Shown here in pieces: positions 2,725-33,660 of a DNA stretch of 34,859 nt. The DNA comes from Octopus sinensis (Eukaryota): assembly GCF_006345805.1 (NCBI RefSeq), contig NW_021828051.1, positions 1 to 34,859 on the forward strand. The letters are read 5' to 3'. Position numbers and translations under genes: made by a program. Position 1 is the first letter of the stretch, and every line of letters starts with the position of its first letter. Below the pieces are notes generated by a model that worked only from the letters and a program-made list of their open reading frames with translations, was not told the DNA's origin and did no database searches.

Positions 2725-3336
2725 TAGATAATAAAACAGAAATATGTAATCTCTTTGAAAATATTTTTTATATTATTGGTTCTCCAATTATTTTGCAAAC
2801 CGACAGTGGAAAAGAGTTTAACAGTTCATATATAGAACGAGTTATTTGATGAATTGAATAGACATTATTAAACAAATTACTTATGACTACAATAAGACGG
2901 TCCATGCAACCACAAAGCATAGTCTATTTAATATTTTTATGAATTTTGGAAGTGATTTTATACAAAATATAAAACAACTTGAAGGACTAATAATTTTTGA
3001 AGCAGAAGATGAAAACGCGGAAATTTGTTATCAAACAAAGTCGGATAATATTTCACCTGAAAATTTTGTTTGAAAAATATCACAAAAGCAGGAGAGAAAA
3101 TGAAAAGTAGAAGAAAATGGAGGTACGATAAAGAAAATATAAATATCGGGGATCATGTCATTATTAAACATGACATCGATGCTAATATGAACAATCAAAG
3201 GTTTTCCTTATCTGATAATGTCGATACAACAAAATATAGAATTATCGAAAAAAATAATTACAACTATTCTTTGGAAGATAAAAATGGAAATGTTCATAAG
3301 AATATTAACATTTCTAAAATAAAAAAGTTCACGTAA
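2725..3336 (+). mobile_element. Decayed retroviral-type integrase (rve) transposase remnant, Ginger/Gypsy-integrase-like
   Basis: Motifs SPIILQTDSGKEFNS and YNKTVHATTKHSLF, then a C-terminal ORF 3070-3336 (INIGDHVIIKH) paralogous to 16988-17302. Contains stops and frameshifts. Confidence 0.7.
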
Positions 3337-6470: not shown

Positions 6471-7190
6471 TCAGGAAATGCTGTCATTCCTCCTGCTAGT
6501 TCTCTGCCTTCTGTTAGAAAACCAATTGCGTATTGTGTCTTCTGTCTTGTCAAGATGAGTGGCCGTCATTTGAATGATATGTCTGTCAGGCCTTCTTGTA
6601 GTTTGAAAAATTAGTTCCAAATATGCTATATCATTCTCCATGAATGTTGTACGCCTTTTCCGATTCCTAAAACGCCTTGGATAGTGTTTGTCAGGGAGAC
6701 GGGAAAAGTCTTCACTGCGGACGGGATTGGCCGAATTGAGTATTTGTCGGTCGAGGATTTCTGCCAGACTGACCAGACTCGAATAGCCAAGTTTGCAGGA
6801 CTCGAATCTGCATATTGTAGTTTGTGATATTGTATTTCCGCCCTCATTTAATATTTCTGAAACTGTTTTTTGAGTTAATCCCATTTCCGTTCGTCGTATT
6901 CTAAAATCTCGACAAAAATTAGATATTAAAACATAACGCGACGACAATTCCGACGGAAAGTGATACTCCCGTCCTGTCTCAGGGATCTGTTGTCTAATAA
7001 AATGACATACATTTCCCCCCGTCTGATTCATCTGGAAGTATTGATCTGATCTTGACACATCACCTCTGTTGGGGATATTTGTGAAGGAAGAAAGATATCT
7101 CTGATTTGTATATAAATTGGAATTCCCTACAGAAGAGACATTTAGTGAATTATTAGGCAAGTTGTGGTTATAATGAGGGTTGTTGGCCAT
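6471..7190 (-). CDS. Divergent POU-domain homeobox transcription factor, 239 aa, no introns apparent
   Basis: POU-specific domain (FRIRRTEMGLTQKTV...SQTTICRFE) followed by a homeodomain (RKRRTTF...RNWFSNRRQR). Confidence 0.93.
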   Translation of the reverse strand: MANNPHYNHNLPNNSLNVSSVGNSNLYTNQRYLSSFTNIPNRGDVSRSDQYFQMNQTGGNVCHFIRQQIPETGREYHFPSELSSRYVLISNFCRDFRIRRTEMGLTQKTVSEILNEGGNTISQTTICRFESCKLGYSSLVSLAEILDRQILNSANPVRSEDFSRLPDKHYPRRFRNRKRRTTFMENDIAYLELIFQTTRRPDRHIIQMTATHLDKTEDTIRNWFSNRRQRTSRRNDSIS

Positions 7191-7318: not shown

Positions 7319-9671
7319 TTAGTGAACTGCCTTCTCATTCTGGCGATGAGCTCGGACACAGCGAGACATGACAGGTGAATTGCGACTGATGGAATCGGTC
7401 ATGAAATAGTCACTCAATTTATTCAATCGACACTCAGGCAGTCTCCCCTCCACCCTTCTCTACAACTCACCAACACACCTCACAGTCTCACACATCTGCG
7501 ACACTATCGAATGGAAAGACGTGGTCATTGGACGACACTCCATCTGGCCTATCCCCGGACATAACTCGCCTATTCGCTGCCGGACTCCCCCCAATGTCTC
7601 ATAGGGCAGGTCCACACCCATCACCTCTGCCAGTGCCCGTACCACCAAAAAGTCCTCCCTCGCCTCTCCTGGAGCACTCACCCCCGGCCGACACTCCTGG
7701 TAACGCCCCTCCATGTTCACATACGTCCCCCTCTTCTCTGTATACGCTACACCAGGCAGAATGACGTCAGCAATCTCCGCTCCTCTGTCGCCATGGCAAC
7801 CTCACAATATATAAAGCAATCCAACCGAGGTACACAACCATACAATCATCAGGCAGCCCATCTCGTGTGGTGATGACGTCATCAGCCCCAGAGAGAAAGA
7901 GCAGGCGAAGATTGCCTCGATCAACAAAGTGATTGAACCCTCGATAGCCCAAGTCGAGTGCCCCAACCTGACTGGCCCTCTGCAAATAAGGAGAGGAATG
8001 CCTGCCTGGTGGACAAGGTTGAAAGCACAGGAATGACTGGAGGAGAGAGAGGCCAGTTTAAGTGAGAGAGAATACAAATCACGTGCAGTATTCTGGTCAT
8101 GTTGGAGAAGAGAAGAACCAAGCAAGACGACAGGCATTCGGGCATTGCGAAACCTGTGAGAAAAGGGGTGGTTTCCTGAGGCAATGTGGTGGAGAATAGT
8201 AATGGAATCCCCCAAATACTGCAATGACAGACCACCCAACCTCATACTCATAGTTCAAGTCCACCCTCGACCCCACCACGGCCACATGCGAATCCCCAGT
8301 CCTCCAACTTGTGCCATTAACAGTCAAAACAACCCCTTGCGGATACGACAGTTGAGGAGAGGGGCCTCCAGACGGGGATTGAAGCCCACAATGAGCACCA
8401 AGTCTGCCCTCTCGACTCCCTCTATGCCCACATTGAGGACATAACTCTCCCGGAAGTCAGCACTGCAGGGCAAACACTCTTCCGTGTACAAATTGTCACA
8501 GTCCAGTCGATTAAAGAGGTCTTTGAGGACAGCGAGTGTCTCCAAATCAGTAAATCTGCCGGCCAAAACAGCCATTTGGTGAGGGGGTGATTGAGTGGCC
8601 TGAAATGTGTGGAATGGGCACCCTGAGTGAGATGAGTTGGAGGACGTGAGGCCAGTGGGAGGGGCAGTGGGCTGTCATAGGAGTGACCAGTCGTTGGTGG
8701 TGGAGTGCGTCGTGGGCAAAACGAGCCTTGTCGTCCAACCACTCCTCGTTGATCTCCTCATTGAGTCTGGGGAGGATTCTGTGGACGACATGAGAGCGAG
8801 TATAGAGGAGAATATGAGAGCCGACAGCGTCCATAACGTCGATGGTCTCCACCCGTCTGGTGTAGTGGTGTGACATACCTCAACTCCCAGGGACGAGCAC
8901 GGAATGAGTGGGGGAGGGAGGTGAGTGCCCCCACTGGACATATGTCGATCAGGTTCCCCGATAGCTCGGAGGACAGGAGGGTGTGGACATACGTGCCTAT
9001 CTCCATGTCCCCACCTCGCCCTGTCGTCCCCAAGTCCTCCATTCCCCCTATTTCACTTGCAAATCTATTCATTAGCTAATTCTGTGACCGAACACATCTC
9101 GTGCAGTGAATACACCGAGTCATCACTGTCTTGACCAGAGGACTTATCTCCTTGTCCTCCACAGCCCTCTCATATCACCACACACTCACCTCTTTCTCTC
9201 ACTCATTCTACTTCTGTCACACCCGTACCCCATCGACTGGTCTTGCAGGTCACATTCCCCCGCCTGGTCACATATTGGACAGTCCAATGGGTGGTTCGCC
9301 AGGATAAACTCCATCACCCCCTCTCTTCCTTTATTTACACTTTCTACCTCGCTTCTTTCGTCTTGGAAGAATTCGTCAGCACACGCATTCCCTCACTCGC
9401 AGGCATGGCACACGACGCCACTGGTTTGGCACTCTTTTCTACTTCCACCAGGCACATTCGGCAGTTCCCCGCTATCGACAGGCGCTCGTGGTAACAGAAG
9501 CGGGGGATGTCCACGCCTGCCGCTGTGCACGCCTGCAGGATTGTGCTTCCCTGGGGGACTTTTACTGCTCTCTCGTTTATGAACAGTTCGATTTGAGAGG
9601 GCAATGTTGAGTATTCTAGTTTTAATACTTTTTCATTCACTTTTTCGCAAATGTCGTAATAAGCTTCGCAT
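7319..9671 (-). CDS. NDUFS1: NADH:ubiquinone oxidoreductase 75 kDa subunit, about 696 aa, 12 exons and 11 introns of 22-26 nt
   Basis: Start [14 protein letters not shown] is targeting-peptide-like. Motifs [54 protein letters not shown] and [10 protein letters not shown] are present. Introns: 9640-9616, 9347-9325, 9189-9167, 9088-9065, 8878-8857, 8621-8600, 8333-8308, 8240-8219, 8005-7980 (GC-AG), 7825-7801, 7483-7460. The spliced length, 2091 nt, is divisible by 3. Confidence 0.97.
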
Positions 9672-10770: not shown

Positions 10771-11062
10771 GAAAGAATTATTTTGTAGCTGTAACTTGGG
10801 TGAAACTTTTTAATTGTTCTTTGAGGGATAAAATTTTTTAAATTGAAAATAAAAGCATTAAGGTAATCATTCGAAGAATTAGAGCAAGGCGGTATTCGTT
10901 CAAAAAAGCTCTTTTGTAGTTAAAGTAAAAGTGGCGTTGTTGGTCACTGTTAGATTTCAGAAAATTCTTAATCCGGTTTAAAAAAGGGTATCTTTTGTAG
11001 TTAATTCGACAAAAAGGTACCATTTGCCACCATAAGAAAATAATTAACATAGACAAATAAAA

Positions 11063-11181
11063 TTGTACGATACTGTTTGTTCCCATGCGGTGACCCAGCC
11101 AAGTACTTGAACAACCTGTAATCGCTTAACTGCCGTGTTCAGATGGAAGGGTATTACCTACCACTAAGTATGATCGTACGT
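11063..11181 (-). rRNA. 5S rRNA gene, divergent solitary copy or young pseudogene
   Basis: About 118 nt with a terminal helix GTACGAT/ATCGTAC, CATAC after helix I, box A-like CAGTTAAGC, box C-like AGTACTTGGCTGGGTCACCGCATGGGAA, and an AATTTTATTT T-run immediately downstream. Confidence 0.75.
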
Positions 11182-16987: not shown

Positions 16988-17302
16988 TTACTTCAATTTT
17001 GTTGGCCAATTAGATTTAAAAATCGATAATCGTATAACCAAAATTTTTTTTATTTGAGAAAAATGTAAATTTTTAATTTCTCCATTATCACTATTTAGTT
17101 TCATGACCTCATAATAGTCGCCATTTATTGAGATGATTTTGTATAAAGATGTGTCGATATCGTCATACAAAGGTATATGACGGTGGGCCGGATTGCCATT
17201 ATTGTCATGTCTAACTACAACATGATTGCCGATTGCTAGGAATTCCTCGTCGTTTGGCCATTTTCTTTTTTGAGACATTTCTAAAGCTGCTCGAAGTGAC
17301 AC
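16988..17302 (-). mobile_element. C-terminal part of an integrase-type transposase
   Basis: KRKW...LAIGNHVVVRHD...DDIDTSLYKII...SQIKK aligns with 3070-3336 (RRKW...INIGDHVIIKHD...DNVDTTKYRII...SKIKK). Confidence 0.65.
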
Positions 17303-17519: not shown

Positions 17520-18387
17520 TCCAATTCATCTGTCGTGAGCCAGAGTTGATAAAGCCGTAATCAGCCGTGTCCGGACATTGGCTGATCCTGAGTTGCCAAT
17601 TTTTTCGATATGACTATGGGTTCTTTTCCACGATATTGATTTGCTCATAGAGAAATCCATAATTAAAATATCATCTGCGTAAATGACCATCTCCATGTTA
17701 GGGAGATCCACTTGAGGAATGTCGCACTACATATTCCCTCAGCCTTTTCCAAGAGAGGTCCTTGGATCGCGACAGATCCGTAACCAATATGTCGTCCGCA
17801 TAGATAATTAGTAGACTCTCCGGATTTTCTGGTTTCGGGATGTCGGCAACGTATAAGTTGAAAAGTAGAGGGCTCAGGACCGACCCTTGATGCACTCCTC
17901 TCCTTAGATTGATTGTATCCGAGGTCCGGTTACCACATCTGATAAAAGACTTTCGCATGTGTAAGAAATTCTCTACCCATTTAACAGTCCTTTGCCCCGG
18001 ATGGATACTGATGATCCTTTCCAGGAGGCCTAGGTGCCAAACGCTGTCGAACGCCTTTGAGATGTCCAGACAAACAGCTGTCATCCCCATCTTGTGTGTA
18101 AGGGCCCTCGAGATTTGCGTTTCCAGTTGGGCAAAGCAGTTTCCACAGGACTTCCCACGTCGGAAACCCCATTGTTCTTTAGCCAGGTAACCTGACTCCT
18201 CCACGAGAATAGATAATCTGTTAAAGATTATACGTTTTATGATTCTTGATATGGAGCAGATGAGACTTATGGGTCGGAAATTTTCTGCACGGTCTTTAGG
18301 TTTCTCTGCCTTTGGAATCATTCGTACCACGGTTTTCTTTTTCTTTCTTCCTTCATTCGGGACGTATCCAGTCTCCCAACTGGGCAT
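17520..18387 (-). mobile_element. Non-LTR (Jockey/I-like) reverse transcriptase remnant made of two joined fragments
   Basis: FRPISL, EQWGFRRGKS, LDISKAFDSVWH, GVHQGSVLSPLLFNLY and YADD, followed by a second YADD-containing piece (17526-17711). Confidence 0.92.
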
Positions 18388-20518: not shown

Positions 20519-21716
20519 CAGTGGGCGGCAAAAAAAAATCCGGTTTTCTTATTTTTCGAATTTTTCAATATAAATTTATATTATTTTTTTTTAATTTAGT
20601 ATCATTTTGAAATGTAAATCGAGTATGTTTTTAATTTTAAGTATTTTTTTATTTTTCATAGAGATATCTTGAATTTAATTTTAAAATGCGCAAAAAAAAC
20701 TCGGTTTTTTTAATTATTGAGTCTTTTTATTCTCAAAAATTTGAAATTGTTGTCATTTTTGTTGTTGTTGGATGTCGTGTATTTCGTGTATCGTCTCAAA
20801 CGAACAATTGGGAATTATCTGAAACAAAAGGAAATATATTCACGTGTGTGTCAAAAAAAACCGTATCTGTCTAAAATTAATATCGAAAAACGATATTCCT
20901 TGTCAAAAAAATTTATCGCACTGAATGACGTCATGGAAATCAACTATTTTTAGTGATGAATGCTGTTTCGAATTTTTAATCACAAAAAAAAGGAATTTTG
21001 TTATAGGAAAAACAACACACGTCTAGAAAAATCGCACTTATCTCCAACTGTTAAATTTGGAGGGGGAAAAATAATGGTGTGGGGATGTTCGGGTATTATG
21101 GAGTAGGCAATCTAGTATTTATAAATGGAACTAACTATGAACTCAGCAACTTATGTGAACATATATCAAATAATCTGTGGGAGTCCGCTGCGAAAATGTG
21201 CTTGAATGAATTCATATTCCTCACAAGACATGGCTCCTCCCACACATCAAAGATCACGAAAGATTTCTTTGCCGAAAGAAGCGTCAAACTATTGGATTGG
21301 GCACCGCAATCGCCAGATTAAATCCAATAGAACATCTTTGGGCATATTTAAAAGTAAATTGTACGAAATCCTCCAAAAAATATGCATGAGCTGAAAGATA
21401 AAATTATCGAAATTTGGGAATAATGCCGAAAGATCTAATACAGAACTCATAAACAGCATGCCGAGAAGGGTGTACGATGTTTTATTTGCTAAAGGACGGC
21501 ATATTAAATATTATTTGACATTTTTTTTAAAAAACCGGGTTTTTTTTGCGCATTGTAAATTTAAATTGGAAAAATACTCTTGAAAAAATAATGAAAATAA
21601 TCAAAATAAAAAAATAAGAGTTACTTTTCACTAAATTTTAAGATTAAAAAAATATTATATCGCACAATATAAAAAATAGAGAAATTAGAAAACCGGATTT
21701 TTTTTGCGCCCCACTG
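20519..21716 (+). mobile_element. Tc1-family DNA transposon (IR/DR type), defective
   Basis: TA target duplications at 20517-18 and 21717-18, about 30-bp TIRs CAGTGGG(C)G(G)CAAAAAAAATCCGGTTTTCT, and inner repeats near 20688 and 21530. Transposase motifs IFSDE, VWGC and WAPQSPD..NPIE are frameshifted. Confidence 0.95.
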
Positions 21717-24284: not shown

Positions 24285-25928
24285 TTAACTGTTTTTGTTT
24301 ATTTTATTAAAACTTGGAATTAAGAATCTAAATTTTGAAACTATCACTGGAATTGGGAATGATATAATTAATATTCCAGAAAGAGAGCAGAAACCTGCCA
24401 CATAAACTCCAATGGCTGCTTATCCAACAGTTTTAATTGTAATAATAGCCCATCAAAATGCATCCGGAATGTTTACTGAGTTAATATTAACATTGGTTAA
24501 TTCTGCATAATAAATTAACGACAAATAAAAGAGAATTGCAGATGTGGACAACTCATTGACAGGAGAGGTTTACACCCTCTCTCTTGTCGCATCAGTGCCG
24601 GCAGGATCCCCAGGCACGCATCATTGAATGAAGTTGTAAAGCGCGCGCTTAACGCCGCTGGATTTCCCTCGATGTTAGAACCGATAGGACTAGACCGTGG
24701 AGATGAAAAACGCCCTGACGGGTCGACCTTATTCCCGTTCAGGAAGGGAATGGCACTCGTGTGGAATGTTACCTGCGTAGACTCATTTTCTTCATCATCT
24801 TTGGTTGACTCCGCTTCTCGTCCTGGATCTGCATCTGCCCTTGCCGAATCTAGGAAAACTGCTAAATATGCCTCTTTGACCGATACCTGCTGCTTCATTC
24901 CCCTGGCTTTCGAGACCAGTGGGATAATTGGACCCAAAGCCCTCAAACTCCTCTCAGAGATTGGTTTAATTATCTCGAGGAGGAGTCACGACAGTCGTGA
25001 AACGAGCTGGCTTTTTCAGCGGATATCGTTCGCGATATTACGTGGAAATTGCCTGTCCATCCGCTCGGCGACTCATCTAAATTAGTTAACTTCTCTATTT
25101 TACTTGTTATTTTACTTTAAAAAAAAGTCAAAAAAAAATTGTGATAATAAAATAAACCACCACTAGCGTAAAACAATCAAGTGAAGAAAAATAGATTGTC
25201 TCAGTATTTTTAGACAAGTTAAATTACTTAATAGCTTGAATATTCGAAATATTTGGATTATTAAACAAATCTAGTTAATCGTCTACAATATACTGTGTTT
25301 GATTAATCCATATAACTTCAAATAGAGTTTGTATGTATAGCGGTGAAATGTTTAAAAGTCAACTATAAATTTTCCAGAAAAACATTCGGAAATAATTTTA
25401 CAAATCAAAAATAAGCGAATTATCATTTCAATTGTAAAATATGTTGTATACAGAACTTTAGTTGCAAAAATATAATTAATTTTGGAAAGACTTTCCATGC
25501 TTATATCATTGTGTGGATAAGTTGTAGATATTTGCAAATTTTCAATGGAAAGCAAAATTAAGATTTGAAAATATTTGAATAATTTTTCCAGTGATAGAAA
25601 AATTAGGAAACTTTAAAGTCATCCACATAAATCTCAAAAAAAATTTCTGGGATATTTATTTCATAATATGGATCAGCATACATATTTTCGATGGATCGAC
25701 GATCAATTTCAAAAAATTCTACTTCTCTTGTAAATTTGTTTATATCGACGTTTCCTGCTTTTTTTGTTTGCGTCATTTTAGTAATAATTTATAATTCCTT
25801 CAAAACTGTCTCAATGTCGGTCAAAAAAATATTCGTTTTTAGTCATATCAAAATATTCGTTTAATTTCAAAAAATTTGTCAAGTTTGAATTTTCGTCTAC
25901 TGATGTTAATAGAGACTATATCTAGCAT
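24285..25928 (-). pseudogene. Shaker-like voltage-gated K+ channel (Kv) pseudogene, split by a retroelement
   Basis: T1 domain (VSINIS, KNEYFFDRH*DSFEGIINYY, NVDINKFTREVEFFEI), pre-S1 WMTLKFPNFS, S2 YFTIEMIIRL, S4 IFRIFKLL, pore IPDAF*WAIITIKTVG* and S6 GILIISFPIPVIVSKF. Contains stops, frameshifts and a deletion after TVG. Confidence 0.9.
24539..25136 (+). mobile_element. 5'-truncated CRE-like non-LTR retrotransposon with A-rich tail and candidate 5-bp TSD
   Basis: ORF contains RHASLNEVVKRAL, KRPDGSTLFPF, LVWNV, FIPLAFETSG and WLFQRISFAILRGN. AATTG flanks it at 24534-38 and 25137-41. Confidence 0.9.
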
Positions 25929-26783
25929 TCTTTATTATATTTAATACAAGCTATTATTAAATTGATGCTTCATATGTATTAGCGTCAAAACGCTATAGTA
26001 ACTGTCAATCAATAATTAATAACCCTAAAGTCAACATATTTACCAAGGAGATGAATAATACTCAATTGGTTTCCAGATATCGATTTCAAAAACTGGATTT
26101 GCCTTAATGAGTAAAAAATTAAACTTTATTAAAACAAAATTTAATTAAGGTTACACTATTTAATTGAAATTTTTCTCTTCCTTTTAAGGGAATAATTTGC
26201 TACTAGCTCTTCATTCTCTATCTTTCTGTCAGATAAAGTTGTTATATGTACCATAGCTTTAATTGAAGTGCCCGAAAGCATGGCAGTTCAAAAATTGCTC
26301 AGAAGTGTATTTTTCCTCAGATACCCTCGTCCCATGCTTGTGTTTAATTAACATACTTTAAGAGTCTTTTTTAGTATAAAAGATTGACCACTTAAAAATA
26401 ATGCAATTTATCATGGTTCTGGTCATCTTTTAATAAAATTTCAAAAGCTAACAATCTGTTATTTCTATTGATAAACACATTTAACTCAAGAATTGAGTAT
26501 TCGCATTGTAAAATTTGTCTTCACAAAGATTTTTTGAGAATCTATTTCTACTAAAAAAGTGACCACTTAATTAATTAATAAGCTCTCGTTGGAGACTTTG
26601 TGGACACGTCCCGAGGAAAGACTCAACATCCCCCAATGGAGGATTACTATCCCTTCTCTAATGAGGACACTACCCTCCCAATTGTTTTACAAAGTTCTCT
26701 GCACAACAATAAATATTATGGCTATCGTGAGAGTGCTAATAATTAATCAAATAATAATCGAACAAGCTGAGTATTAGACAGTC

Positions 26784-28427
26784 TTATTTCCCGCCCATAG
26801 ATTTGACAGTAATATTCCCGCCAACATCAGTAGTGACGTAGACAACCTCGGACGTGGCAGTCCACTCCCCCAGTCCTTCCAACCCCCACAGTAAACCACT
26901 CCCCTACCTCATCCCAGTACGACACCAACGGAGACACCTCCACCACTCTCGGCACACTCTCACACCCCTTTTTCCCCACCAAATACTTCCTGCTCAAAGC
27001 AAGGAAGGCCTCCCTCGCTGTGGACGGGTTCGCCGTCTCCGCCTTCCAACTGTTCTTCAACGGGGCAAATTCCTCTTCACGTGACACCTCCCAAACAGCC
27101 AACCGCCTATCATTTTCCCGCCAAAAATAAAACCGCGCGAAAGGCACACAATCAAAAATAAACTTTTCTAGTTTAATTCCGTTGGGGGTGTCGGGGATTA
27201 CTCGGAGACCGTCCTCGTCCACGAAGGGGATCTTCTTCCGTGCCACATGGTAGGGCAACTCATTCCTACCAATCACACAAAACACCACGTGAGGGTCGCC
27301 ACGATAAAATCCACAGTAAATAAATGCATACAAATATTTCCCGCCTTAAAATACAATGACCCATCCTCTGATCTCCTTCCTCGGTCAAAGTCAGAGATCT
27401 CGCTATATTCCACTATTCCGTAGGTCCCCTCTGCTGTCTTGCAGACTGACCCCAAAGCCTCCTGTGCCTCCCTTCTCTCAATGACCTTCACCCCACACTC
27501 GGCACCCCTCCTCATGAAGTACCCCAGGAAGACGGGATCCCCCACCTTGGCCAGAATATTGTCCACACAAAACACGTGCAAGTACTTCACACCTGTCTGG
27601 GTCATTTTCTCCACCAGGCCGTTCTCTTCAAGGGCGCGAAAAAAGTCGCCATTGCCATCTGTTTAATATTCCCGCCATTGGAGTACTTGGACTCAATGCG
27701 AGACTGTCTTTCCTGTCCAACAATAATTTCCCGCCAAAATCAAAGGCGGGAAAAAGCTGTTGTTCGAAAATAAAGACTTGAGAAGGCTTGAGTTGGAAAT
27801 AGTTGTTTTCCTCGAAATATAATTTGGTGAGTTCGTTGGTGAACTCGCTGGTCATGATGAACCAGGGAATGGAGACCTCCTTCCCGCCAAAGAGGTTCGC
27901 CAGTCGTTCCAGGCGGAGGATCCTTTCTGAGTGGAGTTGGAAGAGGGATTTGTTGGAAGGAAGGCCCACGTTGAACATACCTTTGGGGTAATCCACCCCT
28001 AAACGGGTCCCTTGGCCTCCTGCAAGAAGAGCAATGGCCACCTCCCCACTACATATTGCAGATAGACCTTAAATGTATTATTTTTTTAAATAATTATTAT
28101 GTAAATATTAATTAATAATTTTGTATAATTAATAAAAGTAATGATTTTAAATTAATTACCCATTTTTTTGTATTCCTCAATTTGCTGAGGAGTGGACTGA
28201 AAAACTCCACTCCATTCGTCGTGGCCCAAAGCTTGCAGGCCAGAATATGTTTTTTGTGAAAATTTAACAGCGTTTTGAAATTGTTGGTTTAATTCACTTA
28301 AATTTAAACTTTTTATTTGTGTAAATAAATTGTGCTTTTCTGTCTCTGACAAATCATTGTAGAAGGACAAGACATGTGCCTGGTTATTCTTTTCTAGGTC
28401 AGCCAACAAATCCTCTTTTGAAACCAT
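26784..28427 (-). CDS. UAP1: UDP-N-acetylglucosamine pyrophosphorylase; last exon frame uncertain (stop between 26774 and 26829)
   Basis: Motifs LLAGGQGTRLG, YPKG, IPWFIMTS, NGNGD, CVDNIL, VEYSEI, AGNI, KLEKFIFD, EFAPLKN and EVSPLVSY. Introns at 28159-28068 (92 nt), 27686-27659 (28), 27288-27266 (23), 27133-27107 (27) and one near 26907-26876. Confidence 0.95.
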
Positions 28428-28557
28428 ACAGAACAGAACTATTATATAATAAATTCAAATTTATATTTATTAAAAAATAAAATAAAAAAATAAATAATTA
28501 TATTTATTCAGGTGGTGCCTAATTACTATTCAGTCAAACACGTCATCAATTAAATAA

Positions 28558-29913
28558 TCAATATATATTATATTTTCCCTCCCCGAGTCTCCACAGTCGT
28601 TCGACCTGCTTCCTCCATGTGGGCACACTCCGGGGGATCCTGTCCACTGGACTGCTCTTCTGGGCACCCCTCCTCAGCCTCTCCTTCACGACCTCCTCCC
28701 CCAATTCCCTCCTGTCCTTATAACTATCCAAATATCTACAACAATCACACTCCTCTCACTTCCAGAATGACTTTTTGGCGGGAAATGACTTTTGGGGTGG
28801 TTGGTGGATTGGCGGGAAATCATACTCGTACACAGGCTCAGGCAACCCGAGTGTTTGGTGGAAGAAATCCCTCACGGACAAATCCCAGCACGTTTGGTGG
28901 AATGCCAACCCCACGGGACTCATCTCCTGGTATTTCTCCACCAACTTTTTTGAACAAAAAACACGTTTTTTAAGTAATTCACTTAAATATATAAATATTT
29001 ATTTACCGCCCTTTTTGGTTAACCACATCAAAGCGCGGGAAATCGATTTTTGAGTTATGTCGGTAGAGGACGTATACTATTCTGTGGTACCCTGTTCCAC
29101 GAGCTGGAAATGGAGGACAATAAGGCACAACTGATATCCCAGAGTTATTACTCTCAATATTTGAACTAAATATAATATATTAAAATTAATATATTATTTG
29201 TTAAATATATTTAAAAGTAATAAAATAATATTACTTTATCCAGTGGAGGACTTGTGTGTCTGTGCCTTCCAATAAATTACTGTCAAGTGAGGTCATAACC
29301 AGAGTGAAGAAATTGCCTAAATGTCCATATTTGGCCCAATCTATGCTGAAGAGTGGCTCAAACTGACACTACGAGTACTCAATCCTCACAAAGCCACCTC
29401 AGATGCCTTAATATAATTCCCGCGCTCCACTTTGAGTGCATAATTGTCATCAATCCTGTACTTGACAGAGATAGGCACACATGGAATGAATCCCGAGTCC
29501 CCGTACAGCCCCTTGAAGACGTCGTAGTGCAGTGCCATTGTGTGCAGCCTAGACAAGTCATCCTCTAAAGTTCCCGCTTATTTATAAAATCACGTGTTTT
29601 ACTCAATTCACTATTTTTTGGCGCAATTTTTGAATCACGTGTTTCACTTAATTCATTGTTTTTTGGCGCCATTTTTGATTGAGTGGGGAATGAATTGGTA
29701 ATGCCGATGTTATTGTAGACTGTGTTTTGGTGGGGGTATATTTCTGAGTGGTGAGTGGGGGGTACTTTCGAGTTGGTCTTGGAGGGAAGGGTCCCCTTCG
29801 TCCAGTAGAGTGTCACGGTATGAGGGACGGATTAGTCGGCCGAAATAGGAGACATTTCGATAACGAGACAGCACTCCTGATAAATGCACAGAATATGTCA
29901 CACGTAAAACCAT
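28558..29913 (-). CDS. MRPL38: Mitochondrial ribosomal protein mL38 (PEBP fold), 7 exons
   Basis: Spliced protein contains HYDVFKGLYGDSGFIPCV, FTLVMTSLD, VLHW, PYCPPFPARGTGYHR, PVGLAFHQTCWD, LPEPVYEY and KYLDSY. Introns are 22, about 29 (donor ambiguous), 29, 69, 25 and 24 nt. Confidence 0.9.
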
Positions 29914-29945
29914 TTACAATAAATATATATTTTTTTAAATAAATA

Positions 29946-31003
29946 CACCCCTCGACATTAAACTCTGGAAAATTAATAAATCGTCATTTTTATTATCAAA
30001 TTTAGAAAAAAACTTTTGACCATAATATTTTTTTCTATATTTATATATTTACAAAAGTTTTATAGACCTCGCTCTAGAAATGGAAGCCATCACTCAAAAA
30101 TCAATTTCCCCGCAAACAATGACCCGCAATTTAAATAAGAATGGTTTAATTGGAAGAGTAGCAAAGAAAAAACAATTGCTAAGTAAAAAAAACATACTCA
30201 AAAGATATGAAATATCGAAAATATTCGTTGGTATGTATGATGAAGGATGGAGATCAGTCATTTTTTCAGACGAGTGTACTTTTGAAGTGTATTATGCACC
30301 AAAAAGAAAAATAATATACCGAAAAAGGGGGAAATGAATTCAAAAATTCAAATTATCATCCAACTGTTAAGTGTGGTGGCAGCAAAATTATAGGGATGCT
30401 TTTCATATTTTGGAATGGGTTCGTTATGTTTCATCGATGAAAAAATAAACTCAGGAAAATATATAAACATTCTTGCTAACAATCTGGAAAAATCAGCCAT
30501 TAAAATGGGATTAAACAGCTTCATATTCCAGCATTTTCCTGCAAACAAAATAAATTTACTCGATTGGCCGGCACAATCCCCCGATATAAATCCCATTGAA
30601 CATATTTGGTCAAAAATTAAATATGAATTATCGAGGGATGATACAGAAAATCGACCAAAAAATAAACATCAACAAAAGGATAAAATATTAGAAATTTGGA
30701 ATAAAATTCCAATTGATTTTATTCGAAAATTAATAAATTAGATGAAAACTCGTAGTTTAGAGTTATATAAATCTAGAGGAAAGCATATTCCTAACTGATA
30801 TTTTATTTTTGACATTTGTCCGGAATTTTGTGTCTTAAAAAAATCGGTTTTTGCTTTATTCTCAATATTTTAAAAAGATTTATGATAAATATTATAAAAT
30901 TAAAAAATATAGATGATATTAGCATGGTTAAGTTTTTAATTTCGTAAAATTGATAATAAAAATGACGATTTATTAACTGTCCGGATTTTAATGTCGAGGG
31001 GTG
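29946..31003 (+). mobile_element. Tc1-family DNA transposon, defective, N-terminally deleted
   Basis: TA TSDs at 29944-45 and 31004-05, TIRs CACCCCTCGACATTAAA...AATAAATCGTCATTTTT, and transposase motifs WRSVIFSDE and WPAQSPDINPIEHIW. Confidence 0.95.
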
Positions 31004-31190
31004 TATATAACAAATAGTTTTCTGTATATTTTATTATTTTTATAACAAATCGAGTAACCTGTTAATACCTATATTATCACACAAGTCAGCTGTGTGCCTT
31101 CATTAACTGATTAATGTCAGTTATTGACACATTTGTCCTAATAAAGTGTGATAATCCTCCAGTTATTATTACAGTAAAAGAAAAGGCACA

Positions 31191-33660
31191 TTATTCAATC
31201 AAAAGTTCATCATTTTCATCAATAGTATTCCCGTCGATATCCCTACCAATATTAATATATATAACTCGATTGTAAAGGCAGGCCGAGAGTAATTACTAAA
31301 ACTGGCATTGTTGAAATCCCTCATAAGCCTGTCCATTGAGTTATCCTCCCACACTACCACTGGCAGGTGGACTGGCTGGGAATGCAAGGAAGGGGGATCC
31401 ACACTACCCAATCACACATAACTCAACTCGTAGTCCAATCCTTCAGGGTAGCACATCCCTGGCACAGAAGACGGGAAAATATGGTGGGCATGTGAAATGA
31501 ATAATTCAATAATATTGGTAATATCATTATAAAATTGCCTCTCAGATTCAAAATAGGAGTTGAAGAGCATTCCAAACACAGTCCCCAGGTTTTTACTGGT
31601 CATTTCCCCCACGGACGAATTGTCGGCCACCCTAAAGTGACCCTCTCTCCTTACTCTGCAAGAAAATGGAACAAATATCTCAATCTAAGCCAGGCAGTGC
31701 GGTCAAGTGACCACACAATCTCTCTGATCTGCCCGACCGAGTCATCCTTGAGGACTGTGGCCATATCCTTGAAGGTGGAAAGAGGGATGGGGGGTGTCCT
31801 GAACCCCCTGAGGTATGCCTTGAAGACAGAGGCATAAGTATTGACATTGGAGTCCTCCCACTCAATGCCTCCAATGGTGAGGGGGAGTACCTCCCTCGAG
31901 ACAGGCCATCATTCTGGCCACTTTTTTCTGTGCTCCGGGAATGCGGAAGAGTCCCTTCGAACTGATGCCCAGTCTCCTGATGTGTTTGATACAAATGAGC
32001 ATGACTGGGTGGATATCCTCGTTATTACACTTCTAGGAATCACTGGGTGGAGTACATCCTCGATCTGTCCTTCAAACATTAGGAATTTGGCAGTCCCCAT
32101 CCGGCGGCAAAGATCAAAGAGGGAGTCAAAACGGGATAATGAACTGCACTCATTAATCCCATTCCTCACCTCGATAGTTCGGGGATGACGTCATAGTCAC
32201 GTGCTATGATTATTGAGTATATTTTTATTTCATAGTCCAGTTTAGTGAGGTACCACTGAGTGGAGAAGAGGTGGAAGTAGGCTCTCCCGTAGTTTCTGAG
32301 CAATTGGAGCACACTGGCATTGTTTGTGTTCTCTTTAAAGGATTTTAGAGAACTTTCGAGAGTAACAATTTCCTATAATAATTAATTTGTATATTTTATA
32401 AGTATATAAAAATATATATTTACATTTTGTTCTTTATTTAAAAATTGAATTCTTAGACTTTTAAGCAACCTGACTTTATTGCCCATCTCCTTGGTCAAGT
32501 CGGCGAAGGATTCCTGAATGTTCTACCACGTTAAACCACAAGACCACTTCCAGGGATATTGGCGGGATTTCATAAGCCTCAAAATGTATTGGCGGGAAAT
32601 CCTCACTGTCGAAACCAGCCGAGAAACAGGCATCAAGGGAAGCCCTCGTCAGCCCATTAAAGGACACATGTTTCTGAGTGGTCTCAAAAATGGTGTCAAC
32701 AAGCCCGGAGACCTGTTCCCGCAGTCCAGTGTTGATTAACTGACCAATAATAATATATTCCCACATTTAATAGACTGGTGAAGCATTTGGTCTTGTAGTA
32801 CGTCAGGAGGTTGTTTAGACTGAATGTTGTGATTGCACATTTTATGTAATGTTCTAGAATTTTCCAGTTTGTGCTCGTCAGTTTAATTATAATCTAAATA
32901 TTCCCGCCAATTTACTTTTTTATTTTTTTGGTCATCCAATGTAAATTTTTGTCGATAACGATTAGAAGTGGCCATCAAATGAGTGCAGTTTTGAATGTTC
33001 TACACATAGACATGCCACAATACATCATCGAGTTTCTTAATGTTGGAAATAATTTCCATCCTGGCCATGTCAGTCACATCGGTGACCTAATTTGAGTGAA
33101 AAGTGACCCACAATGTCCTGGATGATGGATTGGTGTTCCACCAGCACGTGCAAATGGTCCCCGATTGGCTGAATGCACTCCTTCAACAACTTGGCTTCCC
33201 TTTCGTACTTTTCGACAGCAAAGTTGGTCATGAGGACTCCAATTTTGGAGAATTCAGGGGACACCTCGCTGTTTCGACTGGAATATACTTAGGGGACTAC
33301 TAGTCATCAGCCACCAGGTCTGAGGGGGAGTAGTTCTTAATGTTCAGAAGTGACTTTAAATAGTCCTGGCTGCGCTCACTCAGGCTATTTAAGGCACATT
33401 TCCACTGATCACCGATTTTGATGACCCAGTCCACCTTACTGCACAGATATTCGTGCATGTTGTCCATTTTCCCCACGTTTACTGTTGTTTTCTGCCCCAC
33501 CAGGAATACCTTGGGATATGCCTTGTATTCTCTTCACGTCTGACCTTCCAAACGACTGCATGCTCTATCCAATTGCGCTGTTTATTCTTATTTATACCTG
33601 CGGTTATTAATACACATTACCCTCTTCTGCTTTTAATTCAATTAAAATATTTCCTATCAT
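31191..33660 (-). CDS. RhoGAP-domain protein with an N-terminal helical (possibly BAR) region; many 22-25-nt introns; start codon tentative
   Basis: GAP motifs KGLFRIPGA (arginine finger), YASVFKAYLR, LRYLFHFLAEV and MTSKNLGTVFG. Upstream exons join in frame through tiny GT-AG introns, for example 32915-32894 and 33300-33278. Confidence 0.85.

Follow-up and report, generated by a model that had tools for sequence, protein, structure and literature searches.

The question raised by contig NW_021828051.1 of the Octopus sinensis assembly (GCF_006345805.1), which was analysed over its whole length of 34,859 nucleotides (nt) and is referred to below as the window, is what one short DNA word is doing inside the bodies of three neighbouring housekeeping genes. 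Namely, the word TTCCCGC, or its complement GCGGGAA, recurs throughout a block of three minus-strand genes lying head to tail, which encode a RhoGAP-domain protein, mL38 and UAP1. An earlier, sequence-only reading of this DNA had described the copies as a dense array of E2F-like motifs and had proposed that they carry a signal at the level of DNA. Our answer is that the array is real, that it was selected as nucleotide sequence on top of the encoded proteins, and that its members look like optimal sites for an E2F-family factor; as for what such sites would do here, we weigh several possibilities below.

A search of both strands of the window returned 16 exact TTCCCGC/GCGGGAA cores, every one of them between positions 26788 and 32907 (Table 1), and none in the rest of the window; the number of cores and their absence from the first 26.7 kb agree with what had been counted before. 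Shuffling the whole window with dinucleotides preserved gives 1.9 expected cores, with a maximum of 5. Because the exons here are much richer in guanine and cytosine (GC) than the remaining window, we also shuffled inside 200-bp blocks, which preserves the GC content of exons locally, and these shuffles predict 0.38 cores for 26787-32910, where 16 are observed, 0.28 for 26787-29600 (13 observed) and 0.13 for 31200-33600 (3 observed). The equally GC-rich control gene NDUFS1, whose CpG ratio is similar to that of the block (0.60 versus 0.69), has none, with 0.15 expected in the same local shuffles, in line with what the sequence-only reading had reported for this gene. Chance and base composition are ruled out by the two kinds of shuffle as the origin of the array, and the enrichment is real and robust, far beyond what chance would give. 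That said, the statement that the motif is confined to one gene block is weaker than it sounds. While it is true that no core lies elsewhere, three of the five recognisable protein-coding genes in the window carry the motif, and the confinement has limited weight because the rest is mostly transposon debris and only two other recognisable genes, a POU-homeobox gene and NDUFS1.

The copies share somewhat more than the core. Twelve of the 16 extend to TTCCCGCC, and TTCCCGCCAA, the top over-represented 10-mer of the block, has 8 copies there and 0 elsewhere in the window. Once oriented, the copies yield a position weight matrix (PWM) with the consensus (A/T)ATTTCCCGCCAA(A/T), and the sub-consensus GGCGGGAATATT is found three times (26815, 27669 and 32901). 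Similarity between oriented copies ends at approximately 13 nt and the flanks are otherwise unrelated, and we are therefore dealing with a short motif and not with a dispersed repeat. A miniature inverted-repeat transposable element is rejected on the same ground, and repeat finders return only the terminal inverted repeats of a mariner element and one 45-bp tandem repeat. The cores occur at approximately one site per 215 bp of the block, on both strands and mostly within gene bodies, as the sequence-only reading had it. Pairs of sites lie 18, 27, 30 and 34 bp apart; however, six gaps of 18-35 bp compare with about three to four by chance on a rough hand estimate (about 18 sites in 2.9 kb), and we make no claim of non-random spacing. 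As a control from outside, we used 65 UAP1-encoding loci of other organisms (362 kb in total), in which cores average 0.22 per kb, no 2.8-kb stretch has more than 5, and TTCCCGCCAA appears a single time.

Could the copies simply be a by-product of the proteins that these genes encode, or of their codon bias? Ten cores lie in a homology-supported or open coding frame and two (26788 and 26815) in the last UAP1 codons or the 3' untranslated region (3'UTR); of the remaining four, three are centred in tiny introns and one (29571) stands before a 3' splice site of the mL38 region. Keeping the proteins fixed, we permuted synonymous codons within genes or resampled them from pooled usage in 1000 runs, and the 12 in-frame copies observed face an expectation of 1.2-1.3 (0/1000). 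The excess is significant for each of the three genes, while NDUFS1 has 0 copies with 0.1 expected. What is more, the copies use the codon registers TTT-CCC-GCC, TTC-CCG-CCA and GGC-GGG-AAx / GCG-GGA-AAx, on both strands, and it is because different registers and both strands are used that no single peptide motif explains them.

In UAP1, which carries 8 cores and 2 TTTCGCGC variants, the copy at 27338 needed synonymous choices only, since the A-G-N that it encodes is conserved. Two other copies depend on residues that are nearly absent from 120 aligned homologues. Namely, in the inverted pair 27728/27746 an F replaces an L (L in 97/120 homologues, F in 1/120), and a G replaces D, E or N (D53/E37/N15, G in 2/120). 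At 27881, in a variable surface stretch, the F of the encoded peptide is found in 0/116 homologues and its first G in 2/115. The exonic cores of mL38, at 29417 (E-R-G-N), 29035 (D-F-P-R), 28812 (D-F-P-P-I) and 28778 (S-F-P-A-K), likewise encode residues that are not those of human mL38 (R for C, P-R for S-E, D-F for V-R). In the RhoGAP-domain gene, the cores at 32592 (D-F-P-P-I-H) and 32716 (L-R-E) are exonic and that at 32901 is intronic, and a PWM scan adds a near copy, ATCCCGCCAAT, at 32562 (E-I-P-P-I), 30 bp from 32592. Codon permutation and resampling, together with the 65 foreign UAP1 loci, rule out the by-product explanation. In other words, the signal acts at the nucleotide level and was selected over coding sequence, and the earlier proposal of a DNA-level signal is borne out by the codon permutation, the unusual residues, the three registers and the intronic copies.

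As a separate observation, the identical hexapeptide D-F-P-P-I-H occurs in the unrelated mL38 (28809-28826) and RhoGAP-domain (32589-32606) proteins, both on the minus strand, and is encoded in the two by nearly the same 18 nt around the motif, GATTTCCCGCCAATCCAC and GATTTCCCGCCAATACAT.

The same controls bear on the suggestion that there is no functional signal at all, and that the copies reflect local composition, codon bias, some quirk of mutation or gene conversion, or an artefact of the assembly. One could argue in this direction that we have one locus only, and that words containing CpG are sensitive to regional mutation regimes. However, local dinucleotide shuffles, codon permutation and resampling come nowhere near the observed counts, NDUFS1, which equals the block in composition and is close to it in CpG ratio, has none of the motif, and the flanks of the copies are dissimilar past approximately 13 nt. 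Misassembly is not the cause, since the genes are whole and agree with their homologues. We therefore consider this possibility largely refuted and give it hardly any probability.

The most unusual setting of the motif is the intron. The window contains GT...AG introns of approximately 19-37 nt, mixed with long AT-rich ones, and in three of the short introns (28, 27 and 22 nt; Table 1), which likewise begin with GT, end with AG and restore a continuous frame when removed, the motif occupies the centre. Removal of the 28-nt intron of UAP1 joins ...DSLALSP to NGNGDFFRAL..., which is the conserved P-[DN]-G-N-G signature of UAP1, in one frame and with both sides supported. Removal of the 27-nt intron gives ...KFIFDCVPFARRLAVWEVSREEEFAPLKN, where the upstream side, the stretch to ...CVPFAR, matches homologues and the downstream side was compared with human UAP1 only. 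In the RhoGAP-domain gene, excision of the 22-nt intron joins two open frames into ...FTLDDQKNKKIIIKLTSTNWKILEHY..., the junction following from the frames alone, without homologue support. Motif-free tiny introns of comparable size occur in NDUFS1, mL38 and the RhoGAP-domain gene, and the idea that the motif is a general feature of tiny introns is rejected, as it is absent from those of NDUFS1 and mL38 and from most of those of the RhoGAP-domain gene. Several introns of the GT...AG type, 23-29 nt in length, interrupt the NDUFS1 gene (7400-9640, minus strand); they are rich in G, T and A and poor in C, e.g. GTGAGTGTGTGGTGATATGAGAG. Also, a 37-nt UAP1 intron (27265-27302, minus strand), GTGGCGACCCTCACGTGGTGTTTTGTGTGATTGGTAG, contains the E-box CACGTG and may house another regulatory word. 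As a second signal of the array, the E-box was rejected, since the 7 copies in the block, compared with 8 in the other 28 kb, amount to a mild enrichment explained by the GC content of exons.

Given these introns, one may ask whether the element acts at the RNA level, for example by enhancing splicing or as a site for an RNA-binding protein that aids ultra-short introns and their exons. All three intronic copies are indeed in the GGCGGGAA sense orientation, and overall 11 of the 16 cores appear as GCGGGAA in the sense transcript. The G-rich sense orientation of the intronic copies is accounted for by the tiny introns being poor in C on the sense strand (56 of 457 nt, or approximately 12%, versus approximately 23% in exons). 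On the other hand, the transcript has UUCCCGC at 5 cores, among them 3 of the 4 that lie in mL38 exons, one exon holds an inverted pair (27728/27746), and good splice models are obtained for most tiny introns of the window in the absence of the motif. Finally, the agreement with the site of a double-stranded-DNA protein described next, flanks included, would have to be a coincidence. For these reasons we regard a role at the RNA level as unlikely, with a probability that is small indeed.

The classical E2F consensus is TTTSSCGC. Base for base, and including the T/A-rich flanks, the consensus of the array equals both the DNA of the E2F8 co-crystal, TTTTTGGCGGGAAAA, and the optimum selected by E2F2-DP1 in systematic evolution of ligands by exponential enrichment (SELEX), (T)TTGGCGGGAA(A) (PMC4686757). 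As an independent test, we took the remaining TTTSSCGC words, which share no 7-mer with the core, and compared them with 400 shuffles: 5 lie in the block, where 0.24 are expected (0/400), and 1 lies outside. These five variants represent four independent events, as two of them lie in one tandem repeat. Control words such as TTTWWCGC and the like show no enrichment in the block. Variants thus cluster together with the core and control words do not, and the sites therefore vary as E2F specificity allows. The related sites that the sequence-only reading had placed near 27134, 27633, 29617 and 29662 are all present among the variants (TTTCGCGC for the first two and TTTGGCGC for the others), and its assignment of the motif to E2F/DP-type sites holds up on both counts. 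We conclude that the motif has E2F-type specificity, while binding as such is predicted from sequence.

Table 1. Positions of the motif copies, motif-bearing introns, genes and other elements of the block in window coordinates.
Feature	Position	Strand	Basis or remark
Cores 1-8, UAP1 gene	26788, 26815, 27115, 27338, 27669, 27728, 27746(-), 27881		both-strand search
Cores 9-13, mL38 gene/5' region	28778(-), 28812(-), 29035(-), 29417, 29571		both-strand search
Cores 14-16, RhoGAP-domain gene	32592(-), 32716, 32901		both-strand search
TTTSSCGC variants in block	TTTCGCGC 27135(-), 27634(-); TTTGGCGC 29617, 29662; TTTGCCGC 32104		
UAP1 (UDP-N-acetylglucosamine pyrophosphorylase) gene	26787..28427	-	tblastn of homologues against the window
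Direct doublet, 27 bp apart, UAP1 3' end	26788..26821	+	last codons (..DVGGNITVKSMGGK*) or 3'UTR, by inferred alternative frames
UAP1 27-nt intron GTTTTATTTTTGGCGGGAAAATGATAG	27107..27133	-	core 27115 at centre; adjoining exon edge has TTTCGCGC (27135)
Core in UAP1 exon	27338..27344	+	AAG GCG GGA AAT ATT = K-A-G-N-I
UAP1 28-nt intron GTACTCCAATGGCGGGAATATTAAACAG	27659..27686	-	core 27669 at centre
Inverted site pair TTTCCCGCC-N9-GGCGGGAAA in UAP1 exon	27728..27752	.	encoded F-P-A ... F-G-G-K
Core in UAP1 exon, variable surface stretch	27881..27887	+	TTT GGC GGG AAG = F-G-G-K
mL38 gene (MRPL38, mitochondrial ribosomal protein, PEBP family)	28561..29913	-	phmmer against human mL38
AT-rich intron or 5' region of mL38	29566..29700	.	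core 29571 directly before ...CTTTAG 3' splice site
45-bp tandem repeat in mL38 5' region/intron	29588-29678	.	2 copies, Tandem Repeats Finder score 147, 89% match
Tc1/mariner insertion, degenerate	29940..31009	.	between RhoGAP 3' end and mL38 5' end; transposase open reading frames stop-broken
RhoGAP-domain gene, ~10 coding segments, N-terminal half unclassified	31265..33470	-	Pfam, PDB matches, three-frame map
RhoGAP-gene 22-nt intron GTAAATTGGCGGGAATATTTAG	32894..32915	-	little beyond splice sites and motif (core 32901)

A word that matches the E2F optimum could, in principle, be read by some other DNA-binding protein with the same consensus, such as a lineage-specific zinc-finger protein or a domesticated transposase, which would mark chromatin, defence or rearrangement. 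That such boxes may be used by other proteins is suggested by the ends of the piggyBat transposon, which carry TTTCCCGCCAAAATAT, TTTCCCGCGCAAAAT and TTTCCCGCAATCC boxes (PMC13405395), and the threefold GGCGGGAATATT goes slightly past the usual flank preference of E2F. Indeed, the piggyBat sub-terminal TTTCCCGC(C/G) boxes resemble the array in an 8-12-nt word, including the alternation CCGCC/CCGCGC. However, they lie within 100 bp of TTAA-flanked ends, an architecture that the block does not have as judged from the sequence and repeat scans; the sequence-specific CRD domains of piggyBat bind left-end palindromes only, and the TTTCCCGC boxes are not assigned any role (PMC13405395). No piggyBac-like sequence was noticed in surveys of the open reading frames (ORFs) of the window, in which no transposase-specific search was made. 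Above all, the joint clustering of TTTCGCGC, TTTGGCGC and TTTGCCGC follows the degeneracy of E2F, which an unrelated binder would have to copy. Boxes of a piggyBat-type transposase are rejected as a candidate, the word being common to both and the link having no other support, and a non-E2F binder in general we consider doubtful.

What kind of genome is this? The window is animal DNA that combines GC-rich exons with very AT-rich spacers and abundant transposon fragments, and has a GC content of 36%. Introns shorter than 30 nt have, among animals, been reported only in dicyemids and myxobolid myxozoans (PMC13644364). In Dicyema japonicum, the genome has 36.7% GC and 49% repeats (PMC6736024), and in Dicyema sp. 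the median intron measures 27 bp (PMC6543705); the lengths of the tiny introns seen here agree with those reported for Dicyema (PMC6543705, PMC13644364). By its tiny introns, GC content and repeat load the window thus looks like part of a dicyemid mesozoan genome. Searches for orthologous or same-genome sequence gave a best identity of 54% for the UAP1 protein and no match for the mL38 and RhoGAP proteins, and a metagenome scan for close relatives returned only distant UAP1 genes.

Our best explanation, to which we attach about even confidence, is that the block is a homotypic array of E2F-family sites placed in gene bodies, which links these three genes to the proliferative state of cells. 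The array would comprise approximately 21 predicted high-affinity sites for a winged-helix factor of the E2F family, spread over the RhoGAP-domain gene, mL38 and UAP1, and the binder would be either the typical heterodimer of E2F and DP or an atypical protein of the E2F7/8 kind, in which there are two DNA-binding domains. We propose that the sites were written into codons and tiny introns because the genome leaves almost no non-coding DNA, codon placement being achieved through synonymous choices and some amino-acid replacements and other sites being set in the middle of a tiny intron. Binding along the block would then tie expression of the three genes to proliferation, with E2F activators at work in dividing cells and repression of the Rb/DREAM type or the E2F7/8 type in post-mitotic ones. 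Sites 28778 and 28812, which lie in the last mL38 exon, could act as promoter sites of UAP1, because they are only approximately 350-385 bp upstream of its start codon. Both the binding by an E2F protein of this organism and the transcriptional output are predictions from sequence.

Several points weigh against this explanation. Characterised systems have a small number of E2F sites near the start of transcription, whereas most sites here lie hundreds of bases into gene bodies at the density given above, and eight of them are 0.5-1.6 kb inside the UAP1 gene, which argues against the plain promoter form of the idea. None of the host genes, UAP1, mL38 and a RhoGAP, is a classical gene of the cell cycle, and with these hosts, the RhoGAP being unclassified, the block does not belong to a cell-cycle or DNA-replication regulon. 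All of the evidence comes from a single locus of 7 kb. A literature search found no paper naming both Dicyema and E2F, and the text supplementary files of PMC6736024 have no E2F entry. It is the density, the eight deep UAP1 sites and the non-cell-cycle character of the genes, counting as they do against a plain promoter, that keep the idea of a domain-wide mark alive.

In its replicative form, this idea holds that the E2F-type sites act on replication or copy number, with an E2F/Rb-type complex that recruits or restrains the origin recognition complex (ORC), such that the island is selectively amplified, protected or retained in the course of the somatic rearrangements reported for dicyemid genomes. 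E2F/Rb is known to work with ORC at the Drosophila chorion amplification elements (ACE3/ori-beta). The density of the sites and their spread over gene bodies are more in keeping with a landing pad spanning a whole domain than with a promoter, the array ends at transposon-rich flanks, and chromatin elimination and selective amplification in somatic cells of dicyemids are described in work cited by PMC6543705. Against this, GC skew shows no switch beyond what the strand of the genes explains, the dicyemid identity is itself inferred, and the motifs of Dicyema circular DNAs are available as figure logos only, the string of the array being absent from the one text supplementary file. A link to the 12-20-bp signals of these circular DNAs was rejected for the same reason. 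On balance, an action on replication or copy number seems improbable to us. In a bolder version, to which we give a slim chance, the array would be a domain-level signal of programmed somatic remodelling, with site-coated gene islands amplified or spared elimination in differentiated dicyemid cells through E2F/Rb and ORC, and such a signal would be important enough to overwrite conserved residues and to shape ultra-short introns. Shared transcriptional control, with the sites forced into gene bodies, fits the data at least as well as the roles that the sequence-only reading had proposed, such as an origin of replication or amplification, a mark for retention or elimination, or a germline licence.

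The hand-spliced UAP1 protein, from exons at approximately 28427-28161, 28047-27688, 27656-27303, 27264-27136 and 27105-26908 plus a C-terminal tail or 3' end to approximately 26787, has 939 homologues at E <= 1e-20, all with PF01704. For mL38 (coding segments 29565-29398, 29368-29240, 29125-29009, 28941-28759 and 28731-28561, with a tentative 5' exon at approximately 29710-29913), phmmer against human mL38 gives E=2.7e-39 with a residue-level alignment, and a Pfam PBP match on one exon is weak. The RhoGAP domain is recognised by Pfam on one exon (E=9.9e-06) and by RhoGAP domains in the PDB (E=1.7e-07), RacGAP1 being merely a weak match among many RhoGAPs; it is within this gene that the TTTGCCGC variant lies. 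The stop codon of mL38 is followed after only approximately 130 bp by the start codon of UAP1, and the sites at 29571, 29617 and 29662 fall in the 5' region of mL38. Directly downstream of UAP1, a short GC-rich stretch with open plus-strand frames (26589-26777) may hold the final exon of a convergent gene, which would place the 26788/26815 doublet between two gene ends.

Between mL38 and the RhoGAP-domain gene, the array is interrupted by the Tc1/mariner insertion, which contains no core copy and is bounded by 70-nt terminal inverted repeats (89% complementary). A recent arrival without the motif is what one would expect if it is selection on host sequence that keeps the copies in place. A second, related Tc1-like fragment lies at approximately 20700-21400. 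Elsewhere in the window, an unbroken 239-aa ORF at 6471-7190 (minus strand), identified by eye, resembles a POU-specific domain plus homeodomain (…WFSNRRQR…) and contains no copy of the motif, the PWM matching it only weakly, at 6835 and 7013. A full-length 5S rRNA gene (11062-11181, minus strand; Rfam RF00001, 61 bits, E=1.3e-10) stands isolated in transposon-rich, AT-rich DNA; as it is the only Rfam match in the window, a known RNA family behind the array is rejected. Retroelement debris is found at 3070-3336 (plus strand), 16988-17302 and 17698-18387 (both minus strand) and 24515-25085. It includes two diverged ORF copies ending in ...KNLHFSQIKKI and ...KNINISKIKKF, which may be an integrase C-terminal region, a reverse-transcriptase fragment, and an overlapping antisense ORF pair typical of a decayed non-long-terminal-repeat element.

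If an E2F-family protein does bind here, the locus would show how far regulatory code can enter coding sequence in a genome nearly devoid of non-coding DNA, with conserved enzyme residues replaced to make sites and introns cut down to two splice sites and one binding site. It would also explain in concrete terms the persistence of some ultra-short introns, namely, as carriers of a regulatory word, and nature would here provide a compact case in which to test how protein and regulatory codes overlap. Should the array instead mark a domain to be amplified or retained, dicyemids would gain a first candidate for a cis element behind their poorly understood somatic genome rearrangements.

How does the array compare with known systems? 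With the promoter sites of E2F/DP and E2F7/8 (optimum TTTGGCGGGAAA) it shares the sequence to the base, the flanks, the variation at the two S positions and short-range pairing. It differs in having approximately 21 sites over 6 kb where known systems have few near the start, in placing them mostly in coding exons and 22-28-nt introns, some through replaced conserved residues, and in host genes that are not classical E2F targets. A partial likeness also exists to the promoters of late cell-cycle genes bound by DREAM, where a cell-cycle-dependent element (CDE) and a cell-cycle genes homology region (CHR) stand in the canonical spacing CDE-N4-CHR. Each copy of the 45-bp repeat in the mL38 5' region contains CACGTG and TTTTTTGGCGC, followed 4 nt on by TTTGAA (copy 1) or TTTGAT (copy 2), so that copy 1 reads GGCGC, 4 nt, TTTGAA (29617-29634). 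However, copy 2 lacks a canonical CHR, no other site of the array is paired with one, and the match may be due to chance, since TTTGAA is common in the AT-rich window (80 copies).

Drosophila ACE3/ori-beta offers a looser parallel, in that E2F-type sites serve there, and are proposed here, as a domain-level signal outside promoter logic, and dicyemids, too, are reported to have selective amplification, according to work cited in PMC6543705. The chorion elements, for their part, are intergenic and are not arrays of optimal E2F sites in coding sequence. A literature search returned no description of an array of optimal E2F sites in coding sequence at the cost of conserved residues, nor of introns made of splice sites plus one binding site. 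Close in logic are homotypic clusters of transcription-factor sites and exonic 'duons', with which the array shares many copies of one site gathered in a regulatory domain, where they overlap codons and constrain synonymous positions. The E2F word, its degeneracy, homotypic clusters and exonic sites are, as concepts, all known; what sets this block apart is its extreme coding density, the conserved residues sacrificed to it, and introns that consist of splice sites and a single site.

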